NCBI GenBank assembly: GCA_002269645.1
Contig: NIVC01000083.1
Location: 310,001-374,000, forward strand
DNA from: Macrostomum lignano
Lineage: Eukaryota
Direction: 5' to 3'
Length of the DNA stretch: 64,000 nt
A program made the position numbers and the translations under genes. The notes below the pieces were generated by a model that saw only the letters and a list, made by a program, of their open reading frames with translations, had not been told where the DNA came from and searched no databases. This document shows positions 20,047 to 61,850 of the stretch, piece after piece. The stretch's first letter is position 1, and the number at the start of each line of letters is the position of its first letter.

Positions 20047-20751
20047 TAGTGGCACAACCAGGGGGTGGGGTAGGGGGGCAGTTGCCCTTCCTTTAGGTGG
20101 AGAAACTTAAAAAATCAAAGAGGGACCAAGCAAATTTTTGCCAATAACAGAGCCTGAAAAAGAACCATCCCTTTGCCCTCTCCTGGCCACACTCTAGATC
20201 ATGTAGTATATGCCCAAAAATTCAGGTGTGCATTGGCCTTGCACGCCAAAATTAGGCATGCACAGTTGGCATGCATCACTCCTGAGAAAATAGTATACGT
20301 GCACACCTGGCATGCACTTTATAGAATCATGTGTAAGAGTTATTGTAAAGTTGAAAAAAGAATAACAAAGTTCAATTTCAAGTGCAAATTTCAAGCATTC
20401 CAGTTTTTTCAAGCTTGTAAAAGAGCATTTAAACAAATCTCTAAGTGTATAAATTTTCTGCTGTAAATAATATTGTTGAAAGAGCATAAAAAGCAACCAA
20501 ATTATCTGGTAATAAGGCTCTATTATGCATTTTATTGTCAACATAAAAAAGACCATTTATTGTTGCAACACCAGCGTATTTTTTAGAATGGCCATGCACT
20601 TAAATTTTTTTTGGTGTGCATTTGTGATTATTCAATTTTTGTTTGGGCATGTACCCAGCATGATCTATACTAGGGCCTATGGCCTCCTGGGACTTTAGGC
20701 CTATTCTCTAGAACCTACCCCCCCCCCTCAAAATTGCTGGTTGAACTACTA
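20047..20751. mobile_element. Old MITE-like element (imperfect 15-bp TIRs) containing a nested second MITE
   Basis: TAGTGGCACAACCAG (20047-61) versus the reverse complement of 20737-51 (TAGTAGTTCAACCAG), with G-rich and C-rich subterminal tracts. Confidence 0.5.
20187..20682. mobile_element. Degenerate copy of the CCATAG-terminal MITE family seen at 34297-34798
   Basis: Ends CCACACTCTAGATCATGTAGT... and ...GCATGATCTATAC..CTATGG. Flanks TCTCCTGG/CCTCCTGG match at 7 of 8 positions. Internal GCACGCC motifs. Confidence 0.6.
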
Positions 20752-21849
20752 AAACAAAAAGGTATTTTCATATTTTTAAAGGCACATCAGCTTAACAAAA
20801 AAATAATATTCAATTTGATTATTCTAATAAAATAAATATACTAGGCTAGGCCCTATGACCTGGATGCAGTATTTTACTGTTAGATTAAAACCTCCTTTCT
20901 GTTTTTAATGTCTAATTATAATTTATAACTAAGGCACTAAAAAGCAAACTAGGGTACTTGATAGCACAGATATGGGATACCTTCTCTAGAACAATTAGAT
21001 GTTTTATTGCCTAGCATAGGCCCTATTAATAGCACTATTTTTATAAGTGTACACCAAGTCCCTGTATTACAGAATGATAAAATATTAAAATTAATTTTTT
21101 TAAAATATTGGATTCTACTCTCAAGTCAAAGCTTGCTGAAGGAAAAAGCTGAAATAAAAGGTAAAACATGGCTAAAAAACAAGAATGCTGAAAACAAGAA
21201 TGGATAAAAAATGCACAGAATTGTTAATGTTTACAGAATACTATTTGCACATTGCCATAAAGACTTTTGATCAAATAACAGTCCAGAAATTTTACTATAC
21301 ATTAGGCCCAGCTATTTATTTCGAACATGTATTCTAATTTTCTGATAGTGAGTTGCGAGTCTCGAAATTTAGTAGTAGTAGTAAGAGAATTTGGCTCAGG
21401 CAATTAGCCTGTTTGGCCAATATATTATAGAGCTATGTATTTGGAATTTTCGAATATAGAAGTTTATAAAGACGATTTGACGACGATTTGCTAAGTTATT
21501 GTAAAAGATAAAGTATTTGAAAGCGCGCCAGAATTTTTACGGTATTTTTAGACGAAAAGTGACGACTAACAACTAACAACGAGTATAAATATTAATACAA
21601 AAATGAGTACAAATTACGAGGTATAGCTTTAATTGCGAGATTACTTTGGTAAGCGAGTTTGTAAAAAAAAAAAAAGACTTTTAGTATTTTTGAAAGCGCG
21701 TGATATTTCAAAGCGTGAAAAACGAACATAAACAATACTTCGAAAGAATTTTACTTTTAACGAATAACGACGATTTAAATATAGGAAATTAAAAAAGACA
21801 GTAAATGAATAAACAACTGAAAAGCGGATTTGTTACACTGCTGATGTAT

Positions 21850-23100
21850 CTGATTCAGTTTGTTTAACTGTTTTAGCTATTCATGACTTCATATATTTTA
21901 GCTACACCAGTGAGCTCTTTTCTGACTCTTTTTTCATTAGTAGCATATCCTATCTTGTGTATTTGATTGCTATTTAAGAGGTATTGACAGAAGTATTTTA
22001 TCCTGATCTCTTCAGTTTGTGGACATTCGGTCAAGTAGTGTAGAATGTCAGAACCATTTCGCGCTCCACACATTTTACATGGTTCTTGAGAAAAAAAGTT
22101 GGGTGTAATCTCGCATTTCAGTTTTAGGAGGGTTGTTAAGAATTTTTTGTTTCTAAATGTACATGGAAAGAAATCTGAAAGGTCGGGCCTGCAGATTTTT
22201 TTGTAGAGATAGGCGTTTTTGTACGTAGAGTTTAATATGTTGCTGATTCTCTAGCTTTTGGCTAAGTTCTCTTTCTCTGTGTATCTTGAGGTGCTTTTTC
22301 ACTAGGTATTTCTCGTTATTAAAGCTTTGGGAAAGTTTATCTTCAGTTAGTGCTTTTAGGTCTATACTTTCTAGTTTCTTTAGTACATTCATTTTCCATG
22401 GATTTTTTTGGCCGGTGTTTGAGTAGAAAATTTCTAGAGTCGTTTGGCAGAGTTTTTTGTGTCTAATCTTCAGCCAGTAGATGAGGTAGGTTTTAGCGAT
22501 TCGTTGAGAGATTGGAGTAAGCTCAAGTTCTGATGATACCACACTGTTGCTAGCAAATTTTGGTAGATTGAGGAGATATTTGTAGAATTTCAGCTGAATA
22601 TTATCAATAGCTTTTGTATCAGACATGGTAGCCAGAGGGCCCCAGAGCTCACAACCGTAAGTGATAACGGGGTAACAAGCGCGTCAAATAGTCTGCGAAT
22701 GAGTGTGATGTCTAGGGACGTATTCTTTACCCTATGGAGTAGGGAAAACATGGCTGTATATCCCTGCTTAGTTTGGTGTTCAATACATTTTTTAAAGCTG
22801 TTTTTTGGTTCAAAAATAATTCCCAGGTATTTAAATTCATTTACTTCCTCTATTTCTTGGTTGTCGTAGTATATTTTTGTAGCAATGCTTTCTGTGTCGT
22901 TTTTTTGTCTGGTATTGCCCTGCATGAACTTTGTTTTGCTTGCGTTTACTTTCAAGTAATTTTGTTTGCAGTAATTTTCCATAGTCGTAAATGTGTCTTG
23001 AAGTTCGTCTTTGTTTTTAGCTAGAATGGCTTGATCGTCTGCAAAGAGTAGACGTCAGTCTCGCCGTTTATATTGCGAAATATTTTTGCAGGAAATGTCC
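21850..23100 (-). mobile_element. 5'-truncated, frameshifted non-LTR retrotransposon (RT C-terminal half plus C-terminal Cys/His motif)
   Basis: RLLFADDQAIL near 23020-23055; LKVNASKTKFM; EVNEFKYLGIIF; LFDALVTP; CGARNGSDILHYLTECP. Split over three ORFs (22590..22982, 22153..22626, 21873..22073). Confidence 0.85.
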
Positions 23101-23320
23101 TATCTTTTAAAAAAAGCTAAACATGTTGTGTGTATCACTTTAAGCAATAAGTTTCTAACACTTTTTTTTAATTACATGTCAGAATTAAAAGGGTAAACAA
23201 TTTACCTCTTTTTTTAATTAATGTTTGTGTTTTTTTTTGTTTTACCACCTGTATCCAGAGTCTATATATATGAAATCAAATTGGACATTTTCGTCATAAT
23301 AATTTGTTTACCCTCAGGGT

Positions 23321-23404
23321 ATGCAATTTTCTCAAAACCAGCCGACCTCAAGGCAGTCGCGTTGTAGCCTCTACGGGAACCAAACATGGCGAAGCTTTCT
23401 TTAA
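23321..23404 (+). promoter_or_regulatory. Candidate upstream ORF overlapping the antizyme ORF1 start
   Basis: ATG at 23321, three nt after the acceptor ccctcag (23311-17), reads MQFSQNQPTSRQSRCSLYGNQTWRSFL*. The stop at 23402-04 lies downstream of the antizyme ATG (23386) in another frame. Confidence 0.45.
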
Positions 23405-25710
23405 GGTAAAATACTCTTTGAACGAGATGACCACACTACCTTTTGTCTTGTGTAAATGTTGGTTGCAGTCAGACATCCCAAAATTATATTATTTGCCAGT
23501 GTCTGGACTCTGAATTTAATTATAAATTAAATTATGATTACGATTATAAATTTTGCTGCCGCTTCATTGGTACTGTAGAATAAAATTTCTTCAGATTTTT
23601 TATCGCTTCCTTTCCCCAAAAATAATATTTTTATGAGGCTTAGGTTTTTGGTTCTTTAAATCTAATTAGTAATTTATGATTATAAAACCAATGCCAATGG
23701 GCATGGCTTCGATAGCCGAACTTAAATGAAATTAGCTTTTTTACTTTAAACTCCACTCCAAAGACTTGCAGCTGTGGAGAAAACTTCAGGGACAAATGTC
23801 GATCATTCAGCTGTTATCTATTTCTATTAAGTCGAGTGTAATAACTTTTTGCATATTTATTTTTAGATGAATCGACAAAGTCTAACAAATGTTAATGTCA
23901 AATCTATTATGCATATTAAATGGTTGGTATATTATTTATTCTAATCTCCCCCTCCCATCAGGAGCACGGAGTTAGAGAACTTCTGCTCGCGAACGTCTGC
24001 CGGGCCTGGGTGGCGTTTTTGATGCTCCCCGGGCCGCCTTAGTTGACAGCGCGGAGTTGTTGACAGAGGGCAGCGGCCTGGGGGAATCAAAACAGCCCCC
24101 TGTCACCCATGTTAGCGGACAGTCGTTTGCTGCCAGAAGATCGGGCAGTCAGCAGCAGCAGCAGCAGCGAGATGAGACTGTGGAGACCAGACCAGAAGAC
24201 CAGAAGAAGCAGAATAAGTTGGCTCATTTCGTCATCGGCAACGACAATTTCGGTTACAACGATGTTGGAGACTATTACGAAAATGAGAACACCTTCGATG
24301 ATGACGATTGGGAAGCTGCAGAGTCGGCGGTTGAGCAGCAAAGCAGCAACCAACAGCCTACTCTGCCTTACAATCTAGTTAGCGACGGTCCGGACGGCTC
24401 CGGCCGAGCCATGGTGCTCCACCTTGGCGAGACTGAGCTGATTGGCGAAAGTCTCAAGCGAGAACTGACCGATATGTTGGAGTTTGCCGAAGAAGAACTG
24501 GAATGCCGACGCGTGCTGCTTGGCATTAGCCGGCGGAGGCAGGACAAAGGTGAGCGGAGCGAATAGTACACTATTAATTTCACAATACTGTTGATCAGCT
24601 TACAGTTTTTTCAATTGACGCTGATTAAACGCACTAAAATTTTGGTTGAACATCCGTCTGAGGCTTGTTGCTAGGCGGCTATCTAAGATTGGTTGCTAAA
24701 TCTCTGAGCTCTTCTACGATGGTCACTGATCACATTTTCTAAGACGGTCGCTGAGCAGCCCTTTAAGATGATCGCTGAGCAGCCCTCTAAGATGATCGCT
24801 GAGCAGCCCTCTAAGATGGTCGCTGAGCAGCCCTCTAAGATGGTCGCTGAGCAGCCCTCTAAGATGATCGCTGAGCAGCCCTCTAAGATGATCGCTGAGC
24901 AGCCCTCTAAGATGGTCGCTGAGCAGCCCTCTAAGATGGTCGCTGAGCAGCCCTCTAAGATGGTCGCTGAGCAGCCCTCAAAGATGGTCGCTGAGCAGCC
25001 CTCTAAGATGATCGCTGAGCAGCCCTCTAAGATGATCGCTGAGCAGCCCTCTAAGATGATCGCTGAGTAGCCCTCTAAGATGATTGCTGAGCAGCCCTCT
25101 AAGATGATCACTGAGCAGCCCTCTAAGATGATCGCTGAGCAGCCCTCTAAGATGGTCGCTGAGCAGCCCTCTAAGATGATCGCTGAGCAGCCCTCTAAGA
25201 TGATCGCTGAGCAGCCCTCTAAGATGATCGCTGAGTAGCCCTCTAAGATGGTCGCTGAGCAGCCCTCTAAGATGATCGCTGAGCAGCCCTCTAAGATGAT
25301 CGCTGAGCAGCCCTCTAAGATGATCGCTGAGCAGCCCTCTAAGATGATCGCTGAGCAGCCCTCTAAGATGATCGCTGAGCAGCCCTCAAAGATGGCCGCT
25401 GAGCAGCCCTCTAAGATGATCGCTGAGCAGCCCTCTAAGATGGTCGCTGAGCAGCCCTCAAAGGTGGTCGCTGAGCAGCCCTCAAAGATGGTCGCTGAAC
25501 AATTCTTATTTAATTACCAAACTCATTTATTTACGAATTCCAATTTTGTTGCTAAAATTGTCTGCACATTTAACTTTCTCAGACACCCTGATGAGGACGT
25601 TGCCTTTTCTTGGCTTTGCCTGCTACGAGCCTCGCTCCGGTTGCGCTGACCATCTGACCTGTCTGGACACAGACGGCTTCGCTTACATGGCCTACGCCAT
25701 TTCCGATTGA
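23386..25710 (+). CDS. OAZ: Ornithine decarboxylase antizyme; needs a +1 programmed ribosomal frameshift
   Basis: Exons 23386-23405 (ATG..AG|gtaaaa), 23962-24549 and 25583-25710. ORF1 is MAKLSLRSTELENFCSRTSAGPGWRF*, ending TTT TGA (24017-22). The +1 frame continues DAPRAALVD...SLKRELTDMLEFAEEELECRRVLLGISRRRQDKDTLMRTLPFLGFACYEP...FAYMAYAISD*. The GP-W-x-stop-DAP context and the LEFAEE...FLGF...MAY motifs are the antizyme signature. Confidence 0.93.
24014..24085 (+). promoter_or_regulatory. +1 frameshift cassette: UUU-UGA-U shift site plus extended 3' hairpin
   Basis: Shift site at 24017-24023. Outer stem 24026-37 pairs with 24073-85 (one bulge, one G-U). Inner stem GTTGACAGC 24042-50 pairs with GTTGTTGAC 24056-64 around loop GCGGA. 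Confidence 0.8.
24744..25500. repeat. 21-bp tandem repeat (GATCGCTGAGCAGCCCTCTAA) in antizyme last intron
   Basis: Highly homogeneous units; produces the artefactual MIAEQPSK ORFs. Confidence 0.96.
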
Positions 25711-27224
25711 TTTTGCTGAACATCCCGCTCGCAGAAGACTGAATAAAGAACGAATAGAAGTTTGGCTATAAGAGTGTGAGGAAAAAATCGCCATGTTTTG
25801 GTTAGAATTTTTCTTTAATTGTGTGTTGTGCTCTGTAGTGTCCGACTAAATATTTAACATTTTCCTCTCTCATCCCTTTTTATTTCTATTTATGCATCTT
25901 TTATAGAGTAAGAGCGTAAATTTATTTTTTCAAAGTGCGTTTAACTTAAAAAATCAATAATCAACAAAACTTAGCGAATACGAAGTAAAACAAACAACGA
26001 TTAAAACAAAACATTTCTACTCAAAAAATTAAACTGTACGTTTCTTTTTGCGTTTAATTTTAACTTATACATTTAACATTTTTTCACTTTGTAGGTACGC
26101 GCTGTGTATTATGTTGTATTTTTGCTTTAACTTGCAACAACCCAGAGGGTGGGACGCGGAGCTCTCGGGCTGCTTTGATCGTTATCAGATCTGTAAAGAT
26201 ATGTGGGCGTAAAGGCTCGCTTCTCTTTACCTGTGTACTAGATTAATTAAATTTAGTTTTCAAAAGCTCCTAGTTTGCTTTAACCAGTTGTTGCAAAGAA
26301 CAAAACGCAGTTTGGGTTTTAAATATTTAAGCGAAGCATGCCGGAGTTTTATTTTAGTTTTTTACGTTACTTTTTTTTCGTTACGTTTCTATTTTTATTT
26401 AATAAAAAATTTCAAATCAATCCTTTTTTTACCTGAAGCTCTTGTTGGCCTAATTCTGCAATAATTGAATTCAGAACAAAGCGCGGTTGCGTCATCCGTT
26501 CATTCGTTTATTATATTTTTGTTTTAATTTTCATTTTATTACTTGCACATCACCTTCTGGAATTTATTTACGGAAGACGAAAATTTTTCAAGCTATTTTT
26601 CTCTGCGTCATATAGTGTAATTTCCTAAGTTTTATTATGTTAGCATAGCTGAAGTTGAAGTACACAATTGGCTCTAATTGTTGTGACGGTGTAGCGCGTC
26701 ACTTATTAATTTTAATCAATCCTTTTTAATAATATACAATTTCTGCCACGTGCTTTTGGCGATGCGTCATTGAGTTCATTCAAAATTTCTATTCGTTATC
26801 GGCAATTCTTTGCATTGTTTATTAGTGAAATCTTGCATTACGTGTATATACTCAGCAACATTTGACAGCAGTATTGACTTTTGAGTGACGCAACTTGCGC
26901 CATGCGACGCAAAGTTGGGCTGGGTGAGGAGGGATTGGGAAGAGCGAAGGGTGAAGAATGGATGGATTGAAGCTTCCGCCCGGTTTTCATTGTTTTTTCA
27001 AGCATTTTTTATATTAAAATGGTTGGCCAGTAGATTGACGCTGTCGAAAAACATGCTCACTTGGGCAAAGGGTGGCGTCTTTTCAATGTTGTTCAGAATA
27101 CAAAGACAACAACAAAATACGTTGTCAGCCAGTCAGGCGAGTCATGAGAGGCAAAGACAACGGGGTCGTACTATAAAGCTGTCGTAGCGTAAGTTCGATC
27201 GTACATCGAAACTTTTACACTGCG

Positions 27225-28600
27225 GAGATAGGAGTGTGGAGAAGACGACGCCAGTCACCTCCGCAACCTGAGAGCAGTTCTGAAGGTCTTCAAGGAGTCC
27301 AGGCTGAACTGCAAGCTTGAGAAATGCATCTTTTTCAGCGATGAAGTCATGCACGTACCTAGGCCACCGCATCGACGCCGAAGGGCTGCACCCGCTGGAC
27401 GATAAGGTTCGAGCTGTGCTGGACGCGCCTGCCCCGACTAACACGACTCAACTGCGGAGCTTCTTGGGCCTCATCAACTACTACGGCCAGTTTTTGTCCA
27501 ATCTTTCCAGTATCCTGGCCCCGCTGCACAGACTGTTGGAGAAGAACTCAAGGTGGCATTGAGATCGCAGCGAGGCGGGCGCCTTCAGCGCGGCAAAGCA
27601 GCTGCTCACGCAGCACAGCTTCTTAGTGGATTATAACGCTGCAGAAGAGCTCTACCTGGAGTGAAACGCATCGCAGTACGGGCTCGGCGCCGTTATATTC
27701 CACTATCGGGCGGCATGGACAAGCCGATCGCGTACGCTTCGCGCTGTCTCAGCTTAGCAGAAAAAAAATACTGCCAGCTGGAGAAGGAGGCCTTGGCGCT
27801 GGTTTTCAGGTCTAAAAATTCCATCACTATCTGTTTGGTCCGGAGTTCAACCTGTTGACTGACCACCCGCTGTTTCTCGGCCTTCTAGGACAAGAGCGAC
27901 CGCTTCCAGCCCTGGCTTCCGACCGAGTCCAACGATGGGCGTCGCTGCTGACCGCGTACCGGTACCGTCTTGTACATCGGAGCGGTGTCTCCATGCTCCG
28001 AGCAGACGCTTTAAACCGCCAGCTTCCTGCATCAGCGGGGCCTAAGGAAGTTCCGGTGCCTCCAGATGTCGTGCAAGTGATGGACTGCCTGGACGCCGGG
28101 CCGGTGACTTCATTAGACGTGCGCACCTGGTCACGCCGCGACTCTATACATTGACACGCGTAGTTCGGTACTGTCTCTCTGCCTGGCCGGACCGAGATTC
28201 CTGGACTTCCGATCTGGTACCCTTCGGGAAGCGGCTGCGTTCTCTGGGGTAGTCGTGTCGTCATTTCTGAAGTCGGCCAAAGCCGCTTGCTCGACTGCCT
28301 GCATGTCGGACACCCTGGAGCATCCCGGATGAAGTCGCTTGCCAGAAGCTACATATGGTGGCCTGGCCTGGATCGTGACATTAAGGCCAATAGAGCTGCC
28401 CGGACTACCAGCGAGCCGGACCAGAAGCTCCGCTGCAGCCATGGCTGCTAATAGCGCTGTCCACGTCGATTTCGCCGGTCCCGTCCAAGGTTGAATGCTG
28501 CTGCTGGTGATCGTCGACTCCTACTTAAAGTGGCTCAATGTGTATGTGACGACAGCGACGACGACTTTCGCAACAGAGGAAAAGTGTACAGAGTTTCAGC
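27225..28600 (+). mobile_element. Decayed Ty3/Gypsy pol fragment (RT end, RNase H, integrase start)
   Basis: YLGHRIDAEGLHP...LRSFLGLINYY; KPIAYASRCLSLAEKKYCQLEKEALA; TDHPLF..LQRWASLL; LHVGHPG..MKSLARSYIWWPGLDRDI; VHVDFAGP. Many stops and frameshifts; no LTR pair identified. Confidence 0.9.
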
Positions 28601-30264
28601 ACTCATCCATGGCCTACATGTGTAGAATTCATCTCGCCCTTGAAGTTTAGAACGTGTATGTGTAGGTAACTCAGTAGTTGTTACGAGCTAGAGCTACCTA
28701 CTCTAGTAGCATCTCTAAAGCTAAAACTGAAACTGTACTGTAAACAGTTACATTTTCCCCATACTGATCGACTTGGCGTTGGCCCATTTAAGCCAATCTT
28801 GTCTCTGAAGCATTTACATGTACTTGTACACGTGCAGCTCTCGTCCTTACCTGCATGTACATGTACCTCTCAGCCCGAATTTATCTCACAATTCACCTCA
28901 TTTGGTATGCCCCTGTAATGGATCCAAGCTGCTGACCATATTGCCCTATTTGAAGTTGAACGGACGCCTCTTCACTTACGAATACGCTCCAGCAATTTAT
29001 TCTGAATAGTATATTAATTTACGAGTCATCAATTAACAATGTTTTATTAGCGCTGTCTGCTCTAACGTAATGTAGCATCGGGGCCGCCCCGGGGGGAGGG
29101 TCCGTAGGCCCGTACAGTATACAGAGAAAATCTAAAGCGAACTAAATGGAAAATTCCACTCCAACTCTGATAGTGACTGGATGATATGTATTATGAGAGC
29201 GAGAGAGCGCGAGGGAGAGAAGAAAACTAAAATCAGGCGATGGAAATTTCCACGCGGCCTTCTAGAGCAGATAGGAAGGCTCGGTCGGCTGCTGCCGTTT
29301 TTATATTGCCTTGTGCCTTTAAGCCTAAGGACAGCCAGGCAAAAACCTCGTCTCTCGTTTTTTTCACTTTAATCGCTCTTACACTACATGGATAATACCA
29401 GCTGCCACAGCCAGTTAAAAGCAATTACATCCAATTTAACAGTTTTAATTAACTAGTGTGTACTGTGGGTGAAACTTAAAGTATGCTAATTCTTGTTAAA
29501 CTAGGGGCTCGCATACTTCTCGCATAAAAAAGCTCGCATGGTGCCCTCGATCTCAGCCGCTGTGGCGCCCCAATTCACCACAGTGGTGGCACCCCAGAAG
29601 TACTGTGGACCATGGCGCCCCTCGATGCTGGCGTCGCCTTAATAAATACGCGCGGCTCTCCAATAAAATATTCTTGGCTATAAACCCCTGCATGCATGAT
29701 GCATGATATGTACATATATGTGTACTTTTATCCACAGTAGCGTCAGACGATCACGGGACTTCAGAAAAAAACATTCACGAGGGATGGGAACGGGAAATTG
29801 AAACTTTCGAAGAGTGCATGAAGACTAATCTCTTCCTAAAGTGCATTGTTGATGCTGGACTGCAAGACGCCTGTGCCAAGATAATCCAATTTCCGATCTT
29901 GTCTGGTGTGGGCAACGTAAAATTCTAGGTTAGGCCCCAAGAGTTTTATTGATCCAGGGCAGCTAGGGGCCACATCCTGCAGGGAGGGCTTAGGGAGGAC
30001 GACGCCCGGCCATCCTCATTTTCTCAGTTTTCCACATCATATGGCTGCAGTCTGTAGTGAGCTACGTATGCGTGTAATTCTGCCTTGCTTCAGTCGGCTG
30101 TATACTGCGCGCTAATTAATTGTTTGCTTCTGTATTTTGCAAAGTATAAAATAATAAGAGTTGCAACAAATTCGTAACCGATTTTTTTATTTTAGATTGA
30201 ACTAAATGGTTACGAAGATTGGTTTGTAATAATTCGATCACTAATACACAACATGTTCATTGTT

Positions 30265-39700: not shown

Positions 39701-42700
39701 GCTTTGCTAATGTTAATGAACTTGAAAAACATGGTTAAAATTGGTATTAACCTTATTATAATAACCAAGGTAACATTTTATGTTAATATTATACATGCAC
39801 AACCCCCCTTATTTACACATGTAAAAAAACTAAAGCAAATTGTGATGGCCTGGGCTGGGGATTGCTCTGCAGCCCTGGCCATATGGTCTGCCGCTCCTAC
39901 TGACTGTTTGTTTGCACTCTGTTTGTTCCCCTCACTGACTCACCGGAGTCACCCCTTCTGAACACTTCCCCCATGCTACATATGCACCATTCGTACGCGT
40001 GTTCCATGCATCGTGCCACAGCACACCTGGCTATGTTGGGGCCCAGGAGCCCGTAAATATATGGCAAAGCTAGACGATATGGTCTGGTTTATATGTCTTA
40101 TTCCTGTCTGCCACTTGGGAGCCAATTCCCAGTGCATAGCGAATCAAGACTTCATTCTCAAGTCATCACACAAATATTACCACAATTTTGGATAAATAGA
40201 GAAGGAACTATGACTGTCTTATTAAGACTAAATGCTATGTCATCTAATTAGTACTATGTTTATAATTTTGGGTTGGCATTTTTGCAACTTACCTTGGTTG
40301 GGCCCCTCGCCAGCTAGCCAGATCAGCTGGGTCAGCTGGGTGTTATTCTTGTATGGTTGATATTGTAGCTGAAAAATGACTAGGTTTTCTTTAATTATCT
40401 AAATCTGCTATCTTTACATTGTTTGCACATAATTAGTTTTTAAATGTTAAAAAAATTCTTATATTTTTACTTATAGTATCTTTAATTTAAATGAAATTAA
40501 TGTATAACCAATCATTTATATTTACTAAGATTGAATATTTAGATAGTTGCCTAATTTCCCCATTAGCATTTTACAAACAGACTAGCAATCTAGTGCCCCC
40601 AATTCCTGGTTCATTTATTTAAATCACATTATTTGAATAAAATTGTCACAGACAAAGATGTTTGCTATAAATCTCTTTTTTTCTAAAAGTAAAAAAGACA
40701 ACAAAATAAAGCTTTCACAGAGATAGCAGGCATTCCCCCCCCCCCCAGATAGAAAGCATCCCCCAGATAGCAATGCTAGGAAAATTTGTGCTTTTATAAT
40801 TATGTAAAATTTTAATAGTTTAGTTATATATTAAAAATGTAGTTATGCGCCATGCATATGACATCATACATAACATATCTCTTATCCTCAAACCTGTCCA
40901 GGGAGTCGCCAATTTACAGTTGCACCGCTCACGTTTTCACAATCGACCCCAAGACTAAGAAAACTTGGCTACCGGCCAGCAATCAGGGTATTAAAGTGTC
41001 ATTTTTCTTTGACAAATCTCGTGAACAGTATCGCATACTAAGCATAGATGACACAGCCCAGGATCCAACTCGCAAGATGCCTATCAACAGCATCATGACT
41101 GAGAAGATGTCGTTTAAAAAGACTTCTCAAAAATTTGGCCAATGGGCCGACACGAACTCTGGTACAGTCTATGGCCTGGGCTTCACTAATGAGGCTGAAT
41201 TGGACAGGTGAGTTTATCCCACCTTTATATTTGGAGTTTTTATCCCATCTTCATATTTAGAGCTTTAATCCCATCTTGATATGTTGGAATTTTATCTTAT
41301 TTTCATATGTAGGGATTTTTATCCCATCTTCATATTTTGAGGTTTTATCCCATCTTCATAATTAGAGATTTTATCCCATCTTCATATCTAGGGATTTTAT
41401 CCTATCCCCAAGAATAGGGGTTTCTCTCACCCGCCCTCTTCCTCAGATTCGTGGAGCAGTTCTGTCAAGCTCTGGATCACACGCGCCGTCTGCGTAAGCA
41501 ACAGCCGCAGCCGTCGCATCAAGTTTTCGGTGGCGGCGGCGGAGGAAGTTTGTCAGCAGAATACGAGCAGCCAATGCAACAGCAGCACTCGCAGAGCGGA
41601 GGTGAAAACTCTCTGGGCAGCGGTGATGATGTCGAGCGGTTGGCCGCCCAGCTTCAGCAGGCTAATTTGAATATGCAGAAATTAGAGCGAGAGAACCAGG
41701 CACTGCGGGCTGGGGCCAAGGCTGTGAGTGTTTGGTTTCTCTAGTGCCTCTATTCTCTTCTTGTCTCTTCTCCCCTGTCTGCTCTCGTCCCCCCTGTCTT
41801 TCTCCCTCCCTGTCTTCCTCTTCTCCCTCCCTGTCTCCCTCTCTTCTCCCACCCTGTCTCCCTCTCTTCTCCCTCCCTGTCTCCCTCTCTTCTCCCTCCC
41901 TGTCTCCCTCTCTTCTCCCCCCTGTCTCCCTCTCTTCTCCCTCCCTGTCTCCCTCTTCTCCCTTCCTGTCTCCCTCTCTTCTCCCTCCCTGTCTCCCTCT
42001 CTTCTCCCACCCTGTCTCCCTCTCTTCTCCCTCCCTGTCTCCCTCTCTTCTCCCTCCCTGTCTCCCTCTCTTCTCCCTCCTTGTCTCCCTCTTCTCCCTC
42101 CCTGTCTCCCTCTCTTCTCCCACCCTGTCTCCCTCTCTTCTCCCTCCCTGTCTCCCTCTCTTCTCCCTCCCTGTCTCCCTCTCTTCTCCCTCCTTGTCTC
42201 CCTCTTCTCCCTCCCTGTCTCCCTCTCTTCTCCCACCCTGTCTCCCTCTCTTCTCCCTCCCTGTCTCCCTCTTCTCCCTCCCTGTCTCCCTCTCTTCTCC
42301 CACCCTGTCTCCCTCTCTTCTCCCTCCCTGTCTCCCTCTCTTCTCCCTCCCTGTCTCCCTCTCTTCTCCCTCCCTGTCTCCCTCTCTTCTCCCTCCCTGT
42401 CTCCCTCTCTTCTCCCTCCTTGTCTCCCTCTTCTCCCTCCCTGTCTCCCTCTCTTCTCCCACCCTGTCTCCCTCTCTTCTCCCTCCCTGTCTCCCTCTTC
42501 TCCCTCCCTGTCTCCCTCTCTTCTCCCACCCTGTCTCCCTCTCTTCTCCCTCCCTGTCTCCCTCTCTTCTCCCTCCCTGTCTCCCTCTCTTCTCCCCCCC
42601 TGTCTCCCTCTCTTCTCCCTCCCTGTCTCCCTCTTCTCCCTTCCTGTCTCCCTCTCTTCTCTCTCCCTGTCTCCCTCTCTTCTCCCTCCCTGTCTCCCTC

Positions 42701-44097
42701 TCTTCTCCCTCCCTGTCTCCCTCTCTTCTCCCTCCCTGTCTCCCTCTCTTCTCCCCCCTGTCTCCCTCTCTTCTCCCTCCCTGTCTCCCTCTTCTCCCTT
42801 CCTGTCTCCCTCTCTTCTCTCTCCCTGTCTCCCTCTCTTCTCCCTCCCTGTCTCCCTCTCTTCTCCCTCCCTGTCTCCCTCTCTTCTCCCCCCCTGTCTC
42901 CCTCTCTTCTCTCTCCCTGTCTCCCTCTCTTCTCTCTCCCTGTCTCCCTCTCTTCTCTCTCCCTGTCTCCCTCTCTTCTCCCTCCTTGTCTCCCTCTCTT
43001 CTCTCTCCCTGTCTCCCTCTCTTCTCCTACCCTGTCTCCCTCTCTTCTCCCTCCTTGTCTCCCTCTCTTCTCCCTCCCTGTCTCCCTCTCTTCTCCCTCC
43101 CTGTCTCCCTCTCTTCTCCCTCCCTGTCTCCCTCTTTTCTCCACCCCTGTCTGCCTCTCTTCTCTCCCCGTCCCCCTCTCCTCCCCTGTCGCCTGTCTTC
43201 TCCTTGTTCACATTTAAATCGTCCTAATTAATGTTTTTTAAAGTACGAGTAATTGATTTTCCTGTGAAAGAAAGTTTTAACTCGGACAATTTGCTTTAAT
43301 TAAAATAATTTCAGCCGGAATCCGATGCCAGAGTGGCCCAGTTAGAAAAGGAGAACTTTATGCTCAAGACTAGGATAAAGGTGAGAATGTGTTATTATTA
43401 CTGCTCATATTTATCGTACTGTATTTAATCGTGTTTGCCGCGATGTTGCTTTCAATTGGGTTTTATTCTCAGGATTAGATTTCCCTTAATACTTTGCTCC
43501 CTGGGTGACATTTCCTGTTTTCCCATCAAACTCTATTACTATCAAATCTCTTATTGAGATTTCCATTTTCTCATCAAAATCTTTGTCATCTTTGAAAGTT
43601 TTTTCCTTCAAATGATGGTGCAGCGCTCGAAACAGATGATAGTCTGTAGGGGCCAGATCGGGGCTGTATGGTGGGTGGGGCAGCACTTCCCAGCCCAGAT
43701 CTAGCAGCCTTTGCCTGGTCAAATTAGCGGTGTGCGGCCGAGCGTTGTCGTGAAGGAAGCTTGCTTTTCTTGCCCATGGCAGCCTAAGGGCGATGCTGTT
43801 TAGTTCAAAATATCTGGCCATAAGTGGGTGCTGAAAAGCAAATGACTTGGTTAGAATGACCACTTTCCTAACAACGTAATATTATTACCAATATATATTA
43901 CTTGTCTCTGCCAAGACCCCTCTTCACCCCTACCGTTGCCATAGCAATTAGAGGACACGGTGACTCAGCTTGATCAGCCGTTGAAAGACGCCCCAGCGCT
44001 GGCCTCGGAGCTGCAGCGCCGGCTGCACGAAGCAGGCGATTTGGCTGCCCAGCTGGTGAAGTCCACGGCTGCTGGCGGTGGCCACGGGAAATATTGA
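33735..44097 (+). CDS. Homer: Homer scaffold protein (EVH1 domain plus coiled coil), 5 exons, 268 aa
   Basis: Exons 33735-33739 (ATGGG|gtaagt), 40902-41207, 41447-41723, 43315-43380 and 43945-44097; phases compatible, 807 nt. EVH1 motifs AHVFTIDPKTKKTW and FKKTSQKFGQWAD...TVYGLGF are diagnostic. The assignment of the 5-nt first exon is inferred from phase and the conserved MG start. Confidence 0.92.
34297..34798. mobile_element. Non-autonomous DNA transposon (MITE), ~33-bp TIRs, perfect 8-bp TSD
   Basis: Left TIR CCATAGTGTGGATCATGCTAAGTGCACGCGAGAA; right TIR reverse complement CCATAGTGTAGATCATGTAGTGCACGCGAGAA. TSD GGCCTAAG at 34289-96 and 34799-806. Subterminal GCACGCC repeats. Confidence 0.9.
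35478..35935. repeat. 187-bp tandem repeat, about 2.5 copies
   Basis: Units start near 35478, 35665 and 35852. ORFs 35511 and 35698 are near-identical and 187 nt apart. Confidence 0.9.
36573..39071 (-). CDS. Intact 832-aa Mutator-superfamily (NOF/FB-like) DDE transposase ORF, nested antisense in Homer intron 1
   Basis: Uninterrupted 2.5-kb ORF. WRKY/GCM1-like Zn finger (CKIKGC...YNH); D1 in LHIDSTG; D2 in VTDFSWAL; CxxH in LCKNH; E in NVHVESWF. This order matches MULE-type transposases. Gln-rich C-terminus. TIRs were not found. Confidence 0.82.
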   Translation of the reverse strand: MMVDLKKRAFYSVHLLVTFQISSAVLEAVKKHGIPTDYCSPGAIYLLLSARLNLRNTVRNRLLMWNWIRRDSNQAPSPPSSPPTPVHVHVPLQSSGAPSDTENSSSSTRGSGTVVCIEEKDNMHESRHQTPPPKESLLVLDQETDTQEIYFEPAEIKAVDLKQLENTRKFSFSKSNLNEALCKALRRVLTCCLRMRGYYHIKSLRSQKAESNFWTVKAACKIKGCLCKFTFIMKEQPTCSERWVWKVYAEGTYNHKEAESPTFRRTTQAEEILLKRKIDSCKGVTEAHWKLMLEKKHMMHVLAMNFDSCKSRNVLKRVLKSSRRKEKLHKDVFIELIRMQEGLKCDYSHPYLPGIVRERCCEPLRVVMYSAEQLNYLASIIKQNSVCALHIDSTGSIISKAAGSGIIFLYSVVTSAAENIPSISIADCVSDDHSVVSISNFLRLFCHHLLNMHPIFKKSTIPIIWVTDFSWALIHSCFEFQQCDLETYLIMQFRYFENSEPFPHNYGVVLCKNHLIHSVSRYLKRRRVPQCIRDTFIHIFTMVIQAKSSEEAKFFIEKIMIIFLSKSATECITAQTELSQQCQTVFIVRETLQSANAHTRLSYDGLVSGSGSDSSSSDDELQQINVCSNDDDSDSENETALHRRSPFYCYFNDRKKYWINHFRGIDVNDNELYFPEIVEFLILRYLPYLPLWAAFTWHCLLVKFKSPFSNVHVESWFKRIKSTLELPLLPTMFCKSNAEFIHDRIKEANIAHKTKSRPFFCPRKRKHDSMTPEGAQEQWDRRRAKYTMRNFVKIIYHSQNQQHDQPPQQQQQQTERQQQQSQKQQHDSKFAA
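41212..41410. repeat. Degenerate ~26-bp tandem repeat (TTTTATCCCATCTTCATATTTAGAG) filling Homer intron 2
   Basis: About seven diverged units between the donor at 41208 and the acceptor at 41446. Confidence 0.75.
41760..43200. repeat. CT-rich 21/23-bp tandem repeat (CCCTGTCTCCCTCTCTTCTCCCT) in Homer intron 3
   Basis: Strongly pyrimidine-biased array; the source of several artefactual 460-510 aa ORFs. Confidence 0.96.
43486..43863 (-). mobile_element. Mariner transposase 3' fragment in last Homer intron
   Basis: FLHDNARPH and HPPYSPDLAPTDYHLF motifs (mariner D..D34D region). The 5' two-thirds are absent. Confidence 0.92.
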
Positions 44098-46798: not shown

Positions 46799-49470
46799 CC
46801 CGATTCCAGAAATTCCAATCCCAATTCCAAGAATCCCGATTCTAGGAATCCCAATCCCGATCCCGATTCTAAGAATCCCAATCCCGACTCTAAGAATCCC
46901 AATCCCGACTCTAAGAATCCCAATCCCGACTCTAAGGATCCAAATGCCGACTCTAAGAATCCCAATCCCGATTCTAAGGATCCCAATCCCGATTCTAAGA
47001 ATCCCAATCCCGATTCTAAGAATCCCAATCCCGACTCTAAGAATCCCAATCCCGACTCTAAGGATCCAAATGCCGACTCTAAGAATCCCAATCCCGATTC
47101 TAAGGATCCCAATCCCGATTCTAAGAATCCCAATCCCGATTCTAAGAATCCCAATCCCGATTCTAAGAATCCCAATCCCGACTCTAAGAATCCCAATCCC
47201 GACTCTAAGAATCCCAATCCCGATTCTAAGGATCCAAATGCCGATTCTAAGGATCCCAATCCCGATTCTAAGGATCCCAATCCCGATTCTAAGGATCCCA
47301 ATCCCGATTCTAAGGATCCCAATCCCGATTCTAAGGATCCCAATCCCGACTCTAAGAATCCTAATCCCGATTCTAAGGATCCAAATGCCGACTCTAAGAA
47401 TCCCAATCCCGATTCTAAGGATCCCAATCCCGATTCTAAGAATCCCAATCCCGATTCTAAGGATCCCAATCCCGATTCTAAGGATCCCAATCCCGATTCT
47501 AAGGATCCCAATCCCGACTCTAAGGATCCCAATCCCGATTCTAAGGATCCCAATCCCGATTCTAAGGATCCCAATCCCGATTCTAAGGATCCCAATCCCG
47601 ATTCTAAGGATCCCAATTCCGATTCTAAGGATCCCAATCCCGATTCTAAGGATCCCAATCCCGATTCTAAGAATCCCAATCCCGATTCTAAGAATCCCAA
47701 TCCCGATTCTAAGAATCCCAATCCCGATTCTAAGAATCCCAATCCCGACTCTAAGAATCCCAATCCCGACTCTAAGAATCCCAATCCCGATTCTAAGGAT
47801 CCCAATCCCGACTCTAAGAATCCCAATCCCGACTCTAAGAATCCCAATCCCGATTCTAAGGATCCAAATGCCGATTCTAAGGATCCCAATCCCGATTCTA
47901 AGGATCCCAATCCCGATTCTAAGGATCCCAATCCCGATTCTAAGGATCCCAATCCCGATTCTAAGGATCCCAATCCCGATTCTAAGGATCCCAATCCCGA
48001 TTCTAAGGATCCCAATCCCGATTCTAAGGATCCCAATCCCGATTCTAAGGATCCCAATCCCGATTCTAAGGATCCCAATCCCGATTCTAAGGATCCCAAT
48101 CCCGATTCTAAGGATCCCAATCCCGATTCTAAGGATCCCAATCCCGATTCTAAGGATCCCAATCCCGATTCTAAGGATCCCAATCCCGATTCTAAGGATC
48201 CCAATCCCGATTCTAAGGATCCCAATCCCGATTCTAAGGATCCCAATCCCGATTCTAAGGATCCCAATCCCGATTCTAAGGATCCCAATCCCGATTCTAA
48301 GAATCCCAATCCCGATTCTAAGAATCCCAATCCCGATTCTAAGAATCCCAATCCCGATTCTAAGAATCCCAATCCCGACTCTAAGAATCCCAATCCCGAC
48401 TCTAAGAATCCCAATCCCGATTCTAAGGATCCAAATGCCGATTCTAAGGATCCCAATCCCGACTCTAAGAATCCCAATCCCGATTCTAAGGATCCCAATC
48501 CCGATTCTAAGGATCCCAATCCCGATTCTAAGGATCCCAATCCCGATTCTAAGGATCCCAATCCCGATTCTAAGGATCCCAATCCCGATTCTAAGGATCC
48601 CAATCCCGATTCTAAGGATCCCAATCCCGATTCTAAGGATCCCAATCCCGATTCTAAGGATCCCAATCCCGATTCTAAGGATCCCAATCCCGATTCTAAG
48701 GATCCCAATCCCGATTCTAAGAATCCCAATCCCGATTCTAAGAATCCCAATCCCGATTCTAAGAATCCCAATCCCGATTCTAAGAATCCCAATCCCGACT
48801 CTAAGAATCCCAATCCCGACTCTAAGAATCCCAATCCCGATTCTAAGGATCCAAATGCCGATTCTAAGGATCCCAATCCCGATTCTAAGGATCCCAATCC
48901 CGATTCTAAGGATCCCAATCCCGATTCTAAGGATCCCAATCCCGATTCTAAGGATCCCAATCCCGATTCTAAGGATCCCAATCCCGATTCTAAGGATCCC
49001 AATCCCGATTCTAAGGATCCCAATCCCGATTCTAAGGATCCCAATCCCGATTCTAAGGATCCCAATCCCGATTCTAAGGATCCCAATCCCGATTCTAAGG
49101 ATCTCAATCCCGATTCTAAGGATCCCAATCCCGATTCTAAGGATCCCAATCCCGATTCTAAGGATCCCAATCCCGATTCTAAGGATCCCAATCCCGATTC
49201 TAAGGATCCCAATCCCGATTCTAAGGATCCCAATCCCGATTCTAAGGATCCCAATCCCGATTCTAAGGATCCCAATCCCGATTCTAAGGATCCCAATCCT
49301 GATTCTAAGGATCCCAATCCCGATTCTAAGGATCCCAATCCCGATTCTAAGGATCCCAATCCTGATTCTAAGGATCCCAATCCCGATTCTAAGAATCCCA
49401 ATCCCGATTCTAAGAATCCCAATCCCGATTCTAAGGATCCCAATCCCGATTCTAAGAATCCTAATCCCCA
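46799..49470. repeat. 21-bp tandem repeat (GATTCTAAGGATCCCAATCCC), ~2.7 kb
   Basis: Very homogeneous array; explains the 900-950 aa ORFs on both strands. Confidence 0.98.
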
Positions 49471-56380: not shown

Positions 56381-56789
56381 AGGGATCCAATTAGGATCTG
56401 GAAAGTTCAAGGTATGATTATAGATGAATTAGTAAATTTAAAGCAAGGATTAAATGGTATATTAATAAAGTTTTAAAGGGTGAGGATTATTATAGCTATA
56501 AGAAATGCTTATCTGGGTTATTCGCTGGAGCTTAAAGAGGTTAAAGCGCTGATTACAACTGTAAGCTCTGTCTGGGTCAATCGGGTCATTGAGAAGGATT
56601 TTGAGAATGGAATGATAATATACTCTTATTAAATAGTCTGGTTTCTAACCTGAGCTTAAGCACCTGAGCCTTATACTCGTAGCTTTCAAATAAATGGATA
56701 CACCTCAGGCAGGACTGCTTTACAGAGAAGCAGACAACATCGAATTAGCAAACTGCTGGGACTGCTTCGGGTTTGTTCTTTTTACAGTT

Positions 56790-58036
56790 TGCACTATAGA
56801 ATCTGACAGTTTGCACTATAGAATCTGACACAGTTTGCACTATAGAATCTGACAGTTTGCACTATAGAATCTGACACAGTTTGCACTATAGAATCTGACA
56901 GTTTGCACTATAGAATCTGACACAGCTTGCACTATAGAATCTGACAGTTTGCACTATAGAATCTGACACAGTTTGCACTATAGAATCTGACAGTTTGCAC
57001 TATAGAATCTGACACAGTTTGCACTATAGAATCTGACAGTTTGCACTATAGAATCTGACACAGTTTGCACTATAGAATCTGACACAGTGTGCACTATAGA
57101 ATCTGACACAGTGTGCACTATAGAATCTGACACAGTTTGCACTATAGAATCTGACACAGTTTGCACTATAGAATCTGACACAGCTTGCACTATAGAATCT
57201 GACACAGTTTGCACTATAGAATCTGACACAGTTTGCACTATAGAATCTGACACAGCTTGCACTATAGAATCTGACACAGTTTGCACTATAGAATCTGACA
57301 CAGCTTGCACTATAGAATCTGACACAATTTGCACTATAGAATCTGACACAGTTTGCACTATAGAATCTGACACAGTTTGCACTATAGAATCTGACACAAT
57401 TTGCACTATAGAATCTGACACAGTTTGCACTATAGAATCTGACACAGTTTGCACTATAGAATCTGACACAATTTGCACTATAGAATCTGACACAGTTTGC
57501 ACTATAGAATCTGACACAATTTGCACTATAGAATCTGACACAGTTTGCACTATAGAATCTGACACAGTTTGCACTATAGAATCTGACACAGTTTGCACTA
57601 TAGAATCTGACACAGTTTGCACTTTAGAATCTGACACAGTTTGCACTATAGAATCTGACACAGTTTGCACTTTAGAATCTGACACAGTTTGCACTATAGA
57701 ATCTGACACAGTTTGCACTATAGAATCTGACACAGTTTGCACTATAGAATCTGACACAGTTTGCACTATAGAATCTGACACAGTTTGCACTATAGAATCT
57801 GACACAGTTTGCACTATAGAATCTGACACAGTTTGCACTATAGAATCTGACACAGTTTGCACTTTAGAATCTGACACAGTTTGCACTATAGAATCTGACA
57901 CAGTTTGCACTATAGAATCTGACACAGTGTGCACTATAGAATCTGACACAGTTTGCACTATAGAATCTGACACAGTTTGCACTATAGAATCTGACACAGT
58001 TTGCACTATAGAATCTGACACAGTTTGCACTATAGA
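56790..58036. repeat. 24-bp tandem repeat (TTTGCACTATAGAATCTGACACAG)
   Basis: 8-codon periodicity; 22-bp variants alternate at the 5' end. Confidence 0.97.
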
Positions 58037-58348
58037 GTTTGACAATATAAGCAATATTTTTGAACGTGAAATCTGAATTACGGCGCGTTACTCTGCTGTG
58101 TGGCTATCTCTCTCACACACACTCTGCCTACTTCAGTAGCCCTGCGCATACGTAAGTTCGCACTGGTGAGCCAGATTAAGTACGCAGGCAACAAGAGGAG
58201 CGTAGATGATACTAGCAATCTTCGCCCCCGTTGGGGGACATCTGGATAGAATCTCTGTTCTCTACAAGTAACAAAAAGATAGCCAAAAAAGCCTTCACAA
58301 AGACGACAGACAAACTGCTCAAATAAAGTGTAATGCAAAAAGAAATCA

Positions 58349-58455: not shown

Positions 58456-58565
58456 CCACCATACAATAAGTACCCGGTAGCTAGTGCTACAATTTCCTTA
58501 GCTCTATAGTGGCTCCTTTAAAATTGGCATGACGCTTACTTTTACGTTTGAAATTGTGTAAATTT

Positions 58566-61290: not shown

Positions 61291-61350
61291 TTGTGCTTTT
61301 TTGTGTTTAGCATTTGTGTTTTTAAGGTTTTTGAATAAAAAAATCTTTTT

Positions 61351-61420
61351 GCACTACTAAGATTCGAACCCAGGTCGCTGCATTAGCAGTCCAGTCTGTT
61401 CGCATCTATGCTATCTCTTG
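61351..61420 (-). other. Degenerate tRNA-like sequence (SINE head or tRNA-Ser-like pseudogene)
   Basis: Minus strand AGCATAGATGCGAACAGACTGGA-CTGCTAA-TGCAG-CGACCTGGGTTCGAATC, with a GCT anticodon-like loop and B-box GGTTCGAATC. The acceptor stem is not convincing. Confidence 0.5.
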
Positions 61421-61850
61421 TCAATTGGAATACGTGAATTGTGGCCCTTATAATTAAATTCTTATAGCAAATCGGTTAGAGTAAAAAGTTATGACATAAT
61501 CAATTTCTCAGTCAGCCAGTATCAGTGTCAATTTAAGTTAGCAATATTGTTACGCAACTTAAATCAAGTTTTGTGTGCATTTGTTCGGCACTGTTTTCAA
61601 CTGGTTGTGATGTAATCTTTATCACAATTGGAATTCAGTCAGTCAGTTTTTTCTCTAGCATTCTTACAATGCATTTCAGGTCGAAAGAGCTGCTTGACCT
61701 TTGCAAAAAAGCATGTTTTTCGAATATTTAATCCCTTTAATATTGAGCAATTTCTTAGCCAAGATGCATGTACCGTCCCAGGAAAATTTCTGATCGAATG
61801 GTGCAAGTTTGAAGAAAATCGGTTGAGCCATTTTTTCTGAAATCTATCGC

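Follow-up and report, generated by a model that had tools for sequence, protein, structure and literature searches.

A three-exon antizyme gene of Macrostomum lignano with a UUU-UGA-U +1 frameshift cassette

In a 64,000-nucleotide (nt) stretch of Macrostomum lignano DNA (positions 310,001 to 374,000 of contig NIVC01000083.1, assembly GCA_002269645.1; hereafter the window), the coding sequence of an ornithine decarboxylase (ODC) antizyme is distributed over two reading frames. The question raised by this locus is how one protein is made from it, and where its translation begins. Antizyme frameshifting is the textbook cellular +1 recoding event acting as a metabolite sensor. Our results indicate that, very probably, the gene in the window is one of three M. 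lignano antizyme copies and relies for its expression on the conserved +1 programmed frameshift that senses polyamines. Locus L009, taken from the contig NIVC01000083.1, was identical to positions 20411–29710 of the window.

Two overlapping reading frames and their product

Direct reading and scripted translation revealed a three-exon antizyme gene on the forward strand, in which no single open reading frame (ORF) spans the protein. The parts of the gene are as follows.

23386..23405, + strand: proposed coding part of exon 1, consisting of ATG and 17 further nt (MAKLSL and AG)
23406..23961, + strand: intron 1, 556 nt, phase 2, splitting ORF1, with the 3′ end CCCTCCCATCAG
23962..24549, + strand: exon 2, with the final 19 1/3 codons of ORF1, followed by the shift site and the initial 176 1/3 codons of ORF2
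24017..24023, + strand: frameshift site UUU UGA U, with the P-site Phe codon UUU at 24017-24019, UGA at 24020-24022, and U at 24023
24550..25582, + strand: intron 2, phase 1, G/GTGAGC ... TTTCTCAG/AC (GTGAGC...CTCAG)
25583..25711, + strand: coding part of exon 3, encoding the C terminus of the antizyme domain in 42 codons; stop codon TGA at 25709-25711

When spliced at 23405/23962, ORF1 reads MAKLSLRSTELENFCSRTSAGPGWRF followed by a stop codon, and thus has 26 sense codons, of which exon 1 contributes six and 2 nt of the seventh, the codon straddling the junction. Its 3′ end is GGG CCU GGG UGG CGU UUU UGA U at 24002-24023. In the unspliced sequence, a TAA codon at 23942-23944 closes the ORF1 frame, and no ATG lies between this codon and the shift site; therefore, the start codon must come from an upstream exon. 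The ORF2 frame, in the +1 register (DAPRAALVDS...), is stop-free over 24021-24549 and has been open since 23975; on the 5′ side of the shift site, TAG at 23972-23974 closes it, and it has no ATG there. The first in-frame ATG of ORF2 is codon 131 past the shift site, corresponding to residue 157 of the product, and the chance of about 130 stop-free codons ahead of this Met is approximately 0.002, calculated as (61/64)^130. A short ORF1 that ends in a stop codon, overlapped in the +1 frame by an ORF2 without a nearby AUG, is the architecture of a frameshift-dependent antizyme. The ORF1 stop codon is UGA, and the P-site codon before it, in the context UUU-UGA-U, is one of those permitted: UUU is given for Platyhelminthes, together with AUU, in Table 1 of Ivanov and Atkins (Nucleic Acids Res 2007; PMC1874602). 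An earlier sequence-only reading of this DNA had stated that no single ORF encodes the protein and that a +1 shift at UUU-UGA-U connects its parts; translation of the ORF1 and ORF2 frames confirmed both statements, and the span of 23386-24023 that it assigned to the start codon through the shift site was exact.

The conceptual product of ORF1 and the shifted ORF2 consists of 244 amino acid residues. Its residues 153-241 matched positions 25-113 of the 114 positions of the Pfam profile PF02100 (ODC_AZ) with 50.5 bits and an E-value of 2.2e-13, above the cut-off of 24.2. Solved chains of antizyme 1 (PDB 4zgy and 1zo0) were also matched with E-values of about 3e-5, in alignments that cross the exon 2/3 junction. 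The peptide spanning this junction, RRRQDK/DTLMRTL, recurs in P0001 and P0004, two database proteins, and is covered by both the Pfam and the PDB alignments. These domain and structure matches bear out the antizyme identity that had been proposed from the sequence. A protein database search retrieved UniRef A0A1I8HZZ7, named "Ornithine decarboxylase antizyme, Macrostomum lignano", as well as a single distant relative, and a second search with alignment yielded three further relatives.

The expression of the gene can be pictured as follows. Ribosomes would start at the AUG in the tiny first coding exon, most likely that at 23386, and read the 26-codon ORF1 across the position of intron 1. When UUU (Phe) occupies the P site and UGA-U the A site, termination would be slow; peptidyl-tRNA-Phe may then re-pair, perfectly, one base further on (UUU at 24018-24020), or the first U of UGA may be skipped. 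GAU (Asp) would be read in the +1 frame, and translation of ORF2 through exons 2 and 3 would give the 244-residue antizyme with the predicted trans-frame peptide ...TSAGPGWRFDAPR.... The presumed stimulators are the 5′ sequence GGGCCUGGGUGG, the UCCCC tract, and an H-type pseudoknot of class II type. By homology, the product would bind ODC monomers and send them to the proteasome, so that high polyamine levels would lead to more frameshifting and, in turn, to less polyamine synthesis.

Two further antizyme copies, on the contigs NIVC01001635.1 (L007) and NIVC01000082.1 (L008), are about 97% identical to the copy in the window. The three genomic copies differ from one another by approximately 3% in the introns and by several indels, and their candidate exon 1, acceptor, run of five Ts (T5) at 24016-24020, and whole cassette are identical. 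L007 and L008 are identical to each other over the roughly 1 kb aligned (upstream region to early exon 2), and both carry an R-to-Q change relative to the window copy (RRRQDK to RQRQDK). Extra copies fit the hidden polyploidy and the duplication of scaffolds that have been described for M. lignano. Intron 2 of the window copy contains a 24-nt minisatellite, TCTAAGATGATCGCTGAGCAGCCC, at 24738-25498 (31.7 copies, 95% matches), which is 389 nt, or about 16 units, shorter in the two paralogs.

The shift cassette and its relatives

The shift site is flanked by sequence elements and by a predicted pseudoknot, which are composed of the following parts.

24002..24016, + strand: 5′ sequence GGGCCUGGGUGGCGU resembling a stimulator, the counterpart of modules B and A in metazoan antizyme mRNAs and presumed to act as they do
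24026..24030, + strand: pyrimidine tract UCCCC (consensus UCCCU), beginning 3 nt past the stop codon and overlapping the start of stem 1
24027..24037, + strand: stem 1 5′ arm CCCCGGGCCGC, pairing with 24073-24083
24062..24071, + strand: stem 2 5′ arm GACAGAGGGC, pairing with 24095-24104
24072, + strand: hinge, a single A between the stem 2 5′ arm and the stem 1 3′ arm
24073..24083, + strand: stem 1 3′ arm GCGGCCUGGGG, pairing with 24027-24037
24095..24104, + strand: stem 2 3′ arm GCCCCCUGUC, pairing with 24062-24071

Homologous cassettes were collected by scanning JGI metagenome and metatranscriptome contigs with a 22-base motif of the 3′ half of the pseudoknot, AGAGGGCAGNGGNNNGGGGN{8,14}GCCCCCT; the 5′ arm of stem 1 lies outside this search pattern. 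The scan returned 44 loci (L014-L057), 39 of which were antizyme cassettes. The motif matches at L026, L031, L041, L044, and L048 were not antizyme cassettes and were dropped. Thus, the 22-base motif picks out antizyme mRNAs almost specifically in these data. The comparison set comprised 38 distinct cassettes, namely 34 from the scan, that of the window, and those of three transcript contigs.

In the comparison set, the sequence GGGCCUGGGUGGCG at 24002-24015 aligned with GGGCCUCGG(U/C)(G/A)GUG in most of the cassettes, and the GGGCC, GG, and UGG/GUG positions of the 5′ motif GGGCCU..GG.UGG were kept both in this set and in a five-sequence alignment. The window sequence thus carries the 5′ modules A and B, which, together with the pyrimidine tract UCCCU, have been described for antizyme mRNAs (PMC1874602). 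The core sequences CAGAGGGCAGCGG and GCCCCCUGU were common to M. lignano and the 37 other cassettes, and two nucleotide blocks downstream of the shift site were near-identical even though the proteins were only about 31-38% identical overall.

The predicted H-type pseudoknot occupies 24027-24104, begins 4 nt past the stop codon, and has a loop 1 of 24 nt and a one-nt hinge, which is the shape of class II (IIa). Class II pseudoknots, with a long loop 1 and a one-nt hinge, are present in Platyhelminthes (PMC1874602), and the structure predicted here matches the class II(a) type of invertebrate antizymes. In the five-sequence alignment, 91.8% of the cells were paired, compared with 36-53% when the partners were slid, and two-sided changes were found in four pairs. 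The minimum-free-energy fold, which is nested, recovered stem 1 at -46.4 kcal/mol, compared with -37 +/- 3.5 for shuffled sequences (z = -2.72). The ten pairs of the stem 1 core (positions 2-11) were canonical in 38 of the 38 distinct cassettes, with alternation among GC, AU, GU, and CG at four positions, including flips from G-C to C-G, and the outer three pairs of stem 2 covaried. Compensatory changes were therefore observed in both stems; the search pattern itself fixed the inner portion of stem 2 and some of the 3′ arm of stem 1. A scan of 23000-29000 against the covariance models of Rfam (E <= 10) gave no antizyme element, and hence no class I pseudoknot of the vertebrate OAZ1/OAZ2 type, but only two chance-level matches (SNORD44-like and FsrA-like). 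Reporters can be designed from the exact coordinates given here for the shift site, for the 5′ modules, and for the class II pseudoknot.

The P-site codon was UCC in 28 of the cassettes, UUU in four, GUU in three, AUU in two, and CUU in one. The stop context was mostly UGA-U, with UGA-C, UGA-G, and UGA-A in a few. In the transcript-like contigs of relatives, each AUG-initiated ORF1 stopped at UGA in the same register to the downstream structure: ORF1 ended with ...GGG CCU UUG UGG UGU CUU UGA G in L001-L006 and L011, with ...UGU AUU UGA A in L010, and with ...GGG CCU CUG UGG UGU UCC UGA U in L012 and L013. The 38 cassettes, with UCC, UUU, GUU, AUU, and CUU on one conserved scaffold, represent a natural experiment on the P-site codons that are tolerated.

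A natural antizyme with CUU-UGA was encountered (L001:163-172, also L002-L006, and L011:161-170) in transcript contigs that come from six SRA runs, an ENA assembly, and JGI data. According to the 2007 review (PMC1874602), no natural antizyme gene had been found to use CUU-UGA. A limited literature check retrieved no later report of one, and a literature search with the SRA run numbers of these transcripts returned nothing; if still unreported, this would be the first natural CUU-UGA antizyme. Its CUU-UGA-G site has the same P-site codon and stop codon as the shift site of bacterial release factor 2. The CUU-UGA transcripts, to which L010 is a sister sequence, are probably from a flatworm: Table 1 of PMC1874602 lists AUU for Platyhelminthes only, and M. 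lignano has the same stem 1 sequence, CCCCGGGCCG. NUU codons thus occur as UUU (M. lignano), AUU (planarians, trematodes, and L010), and CUU (L001-L006 and L011). We tentatively raise the idea, to which we give somewhat less than even weight, that in this probable flatworm lineage the first base of the P-site codon may vary freely while UU-U is fixed. If true, this would argue for tRNA re-pairing on UU_U over occlusion of an A-site base.

The start of ORF1 and competing explanations

Candidates for exon 1 were defined as phase-compatible ATG...GT segments within 4 kb upstream of the acceptor, which gave 107 segments. The candidate start codon at 23386-23388 has the context CCAAACATGG, and the candidate donor AAG/GTAAAA follows 23405. 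This segment was the nearest among those with top-scoring donors. Twelve of the 107 candidates yield an ORF1 of 25-28 codons, the commonest length in related cassettes when ORF1 is bounded by the upstream stop codon, and only 23386-23405 also gives a start of the form M-x-x-[LIVM]-[ST]. Such a start was present in 8 of 17 homologous ORF1s, and many of the ORF1s of 25-28 codons open with MPS(L/I)S. Positions 23386-23405 are therefore probably the exact coding part of exon 1, as judged from these sequence features.

The acceptor side of the junction is well supported. A polypyrimidine/CAG acceptor, CCCTCCCATCAG/G, lies directly before 23962, 58 nt before the ORF1 stop codon, and the genomic contigs L027, L032, and L034 have CAG 55 nt before the stop codon in the same phase, a difference of one codon, preceded in L027 and L034 by a pyrimidine-rich stretch. 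Going upstream from the ORF1 stop codon, the genomic-type contig L032 and L018, a contig of complementary DNA (cDNA) type, are collinear over exactly 55 nt; past this point, L032 reads ...TTGCAG/, whereas L018 runs on into ATGCCGTCATTATCAAACGCCAATAA. The 26-nt coding mini-exon was not found within 3.1 kb upstream in L032. L032 (intron end at position 3075), L027, and L034 are unrelated environmental invertebrate genomic contigs that have the phase-2 ORF1 intron at essentially the place seen in M. lignano, which suggests that this intron position is ancient in antizyme genes. The sequence-only reading had described ORF1 as very short and split by an intron. The shortness did not hold, as 25-28 codons is the commonest length among related cassettes; the split itself stood, given the closed unspliced frame and the conserved acceptor, but not as a peculiarity, since a short, intron-split ORF1 is typical of the class.

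The most serious alternative is that the frameshift is real and that ORF1 starts elsewhere, in another upstream exon, at a spliced leader (SL) acceptor inside exon 2, or at a non-AUG codon, and we consider it rather unlikely though by no means negligible. It draws on the number of phase-compatible first exons, on a junction read from genomic sequence, and on the M. lignano SL, which ends in AUG and is trans-spliced to about 30% of genes (PMC8629364): the sites AG/TTA at 23971/23972 and AG/AAC at 23977/23978 would place the SL AUG in the ORF1 frame. At the strong acceptor 23961/23962, however, trans-splicing was rejected as the source of the ORF1 AUG, since the SL AUG falls in the third frame there (MEHGVREL...*). 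The position and phase of this acceptor match a conserved cis-spliced intron elsewhere, with an upstream coding mini-exon in cDNA, and the proposed exon 1 combines the commonest ORF1 length and the M..LS motif with a good Kozak context, a good donor, and a TATA-like sequence, TATATATA at 23263, about 120 nt upstream. A start at 23386 thus remains the preferred one.

A second alternative is that no frameshift product is made and that the functional protein is an 88-residue polypeptide initiated at the internal AUG of ORF2. Public records do present the gene in this form: GenBank PAA91617.1 is an 88-residue "hypothetical protein" begun at the internal ORF2 Met, and the 90% cluster of UniRef A0A1I8HZZ7 holds three GenBank entries of this kind (PAA91617.1, PAA65606.1, and PAA91652.1), with the gene names BOX15_Mlig032063g1, Mlig002806g1, and Mlig002806g2. 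This model, however, is merely the longest ATG-initiated ORF, and it disregards the 130 stop-free codons upstream in the same frame, the shift cassette and the covarying pseudoknot conserved over the 38 cassettes, and the frameshifting published for M. lignano (PMC1874602), so that we regard it as very improbable. The remaining record, UniProt A0A1I8HZZ7, begins with RTSARERLPGLGGVFDAPR, that is, with the ORF2 frame from its upstream stop codon, and has no Met. The expectation that automated annotation would truncate the gene was therefore fulfilled by both kinds of record. A literature search for Mlig032063 and Mlig002806 found no mention of them. Every public M. lignano gene model that we found is wrong, namely the 88-residue "hypothetical protein" given for each of the three copies and the Met-less UniProt ORF2 translations. 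What is useful here is that the gene model is corrected at three mis-annotated loci, together with the side observation of a natural CUU-UGA antizyme site. Since M. lignano is a model for regeneration and stem cells, work on polyamine control would miss the antizyme gene or be mis-designed against it.

The third alternative, that the apparent frameshift is an assembly indel in the T5 homopolymer or belongs to a pseudogene copy, hardly deserves credence: a five-T run in a long-read-based assembly of a repeat-rich, polyploid genome could invite such an error, but the run is identical in three separately assembled copies, the peptide GGVFDAPR in UniRef proteins of an independent assembly demands five Ts, the stop codon has exactly the same register to the pseudoknot in all homologous cassettes, and UUU-UGA was published for M. 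lignano in 2007 (PMC1874602). Assembly error is excluded because the three genomic copies, the independent assembly, and the 2007 publication agree on the site, and the suggestion that an extra T might overturn the frameshift thus fails.

Several points count against an antizyme gene that starts at 23386 and is regulated by polyamines through the elements described. The 107 phase-compatible candidates lie within only 4 kb, and eight of them tie on the crude donor score. We infer the junction 23405/23962 and the start codon from genomic sequence, and the contrast between paralogs does not separate exon from intron: the copies are too alike (97% identical), and mismatch-free runs as long as that over exon 1 also occur within the intron. 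Trans-splicing of the antizyme mRNA is possible, given the share of SL trans-spliced genes. An ATG at 23321, in the context CAGGGTATGC, begins an ORF of 27 codons in another frame (23321-23404) that overlaps the proposed start of ORF1 and ends with TAA at 23402-23404, just 5′ of the exon 1 donor; it would be an overlapping upstream ORF if the transcript begins upstream of 23321. Many positions of the pseudoknot were fixed by the search pattern, and invariance there is uninformative; stem 2 contains an unexplained A.C mismatch in all cassettes, at positions that were also fixed by the pattern. The absence of an Rfam match adds no support, and would be expected if Rfam models only the vertebrate element. 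The ODC_AZ match is confined to the profile positions given above. Polyamine responsiveness of this gene is a prediction from the established biology of antizymes (PMC1874602).

Known antizyme systems and other features of the window

The UUU-UGA antizyme site of M. lignano has been known since 2007, when the species was explicitly named by Ivanov and Atkins (PMC1874602); the instance is therefore not new, and its description as a known invertebrate variant was correct. Their entry concerns the same species and the same UUU-UGA, in a phylum with class II pseudoknots; it is presumably based on expressed sequence tags, and the main text contains neither a gene structure nor coordinates nor an ORF1 sequence of M. 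lignano. A full-text literature search for antizyme and Macrostomum retrieved only this paper and an unrelated one, and the OAF paper does not mention M. lignano. The genomic exon-intron model, the three copies, the pseudoknot coordinates, and the mis-annotation of the public models are added here.

Among known systems, the class IIa invertebrate antizymes (type Crassostrea gigas; Ivanov et al. 2004, as cited in PMC1874602) share the layout found in M. lignano, with stem 1 a few nt past the stop codon, a long loop 1, a one-nt hinge, modules A and B, and a UCCC(U/C) tract. M. lignano differs from the usual class IIa in having UUU rather than UCC in the P site and GGG/CCU rather than A(C/U)G/(C/U)GU in the middle of stem 1. 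The antizymes of planarians and trematodes, such as DjOAZ of Dugesia japonica (AUU-UGA-UGA-G; PMC5574924), are from the same phylum and likewise have two ORFs and an NUU-UGA site, which allows UU-U re-pairing, but their P-site codon is AUU, whereas that of M. lignano is UUU. In the contig L045, which has AUU-UGA-UGA-G, the pseudoknot is shared and the sequence around module A is different. The antizymes of Caenorhabditis-clade nematodes have the same UUU P-site codon and UGA as M. lignano. Their mRNAs, however, have lost module B and gained module E (PMC1874602), whereas M. lignano retains both a sequence resembling module B, GGGCCU, and a pseudoknot of class II; the two groups probably came to use UUU independently of each other. 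Mammalian OAZ1 shares with M. lignano the +1 shift at the ORF1 UGA-U, the 5′ GGGCCU.GGUGG, a 3′ pseudoknot, and the ODC_AZ domain. It differs in its UCC P-site codon, which does not allow +1 re-pairing, its compact class I pseudoknot, and its longer ORF1 with two AUGs.

One further feature of the gene lies past its stop codon.

25742..25747, + strand: candidate polyadenylation signal AATAAA, 30 nt past the stop codon

The window is rich in minisatellites with periods of 12-39 nt, represented by 30 rows with a score of at least 200 in the Tandem Repeats Finder output. Examples are located at 46854-49468, 58563-64000, 41792-43187, and 56784-58044, and the largest arrays consist of 124.5 copies of a 21-nt unit and 236 copies of a 23-nt unit, the latter running off the end of the window. 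The minisatellites create long ORFs that are open on both strands and reach 954 amino acid residues. In a Pfam scan, the other large ORFs of the window gave only spurious coiled-coil and low-complexity matches caused by minisatellites. At about 27200-28400 on the + strand, approximately 1.5 kb downstream of the antizyme gene, a degenerate stretch resembling the pol region of a long terminal repeat (LTR) retrotransposon was observed (reverse transcriptase/RNase H-type, ...PIAYASRCLSLAEKKYCQLEKEALALVF...), with 14 stop codons in one continuous-frame translation.

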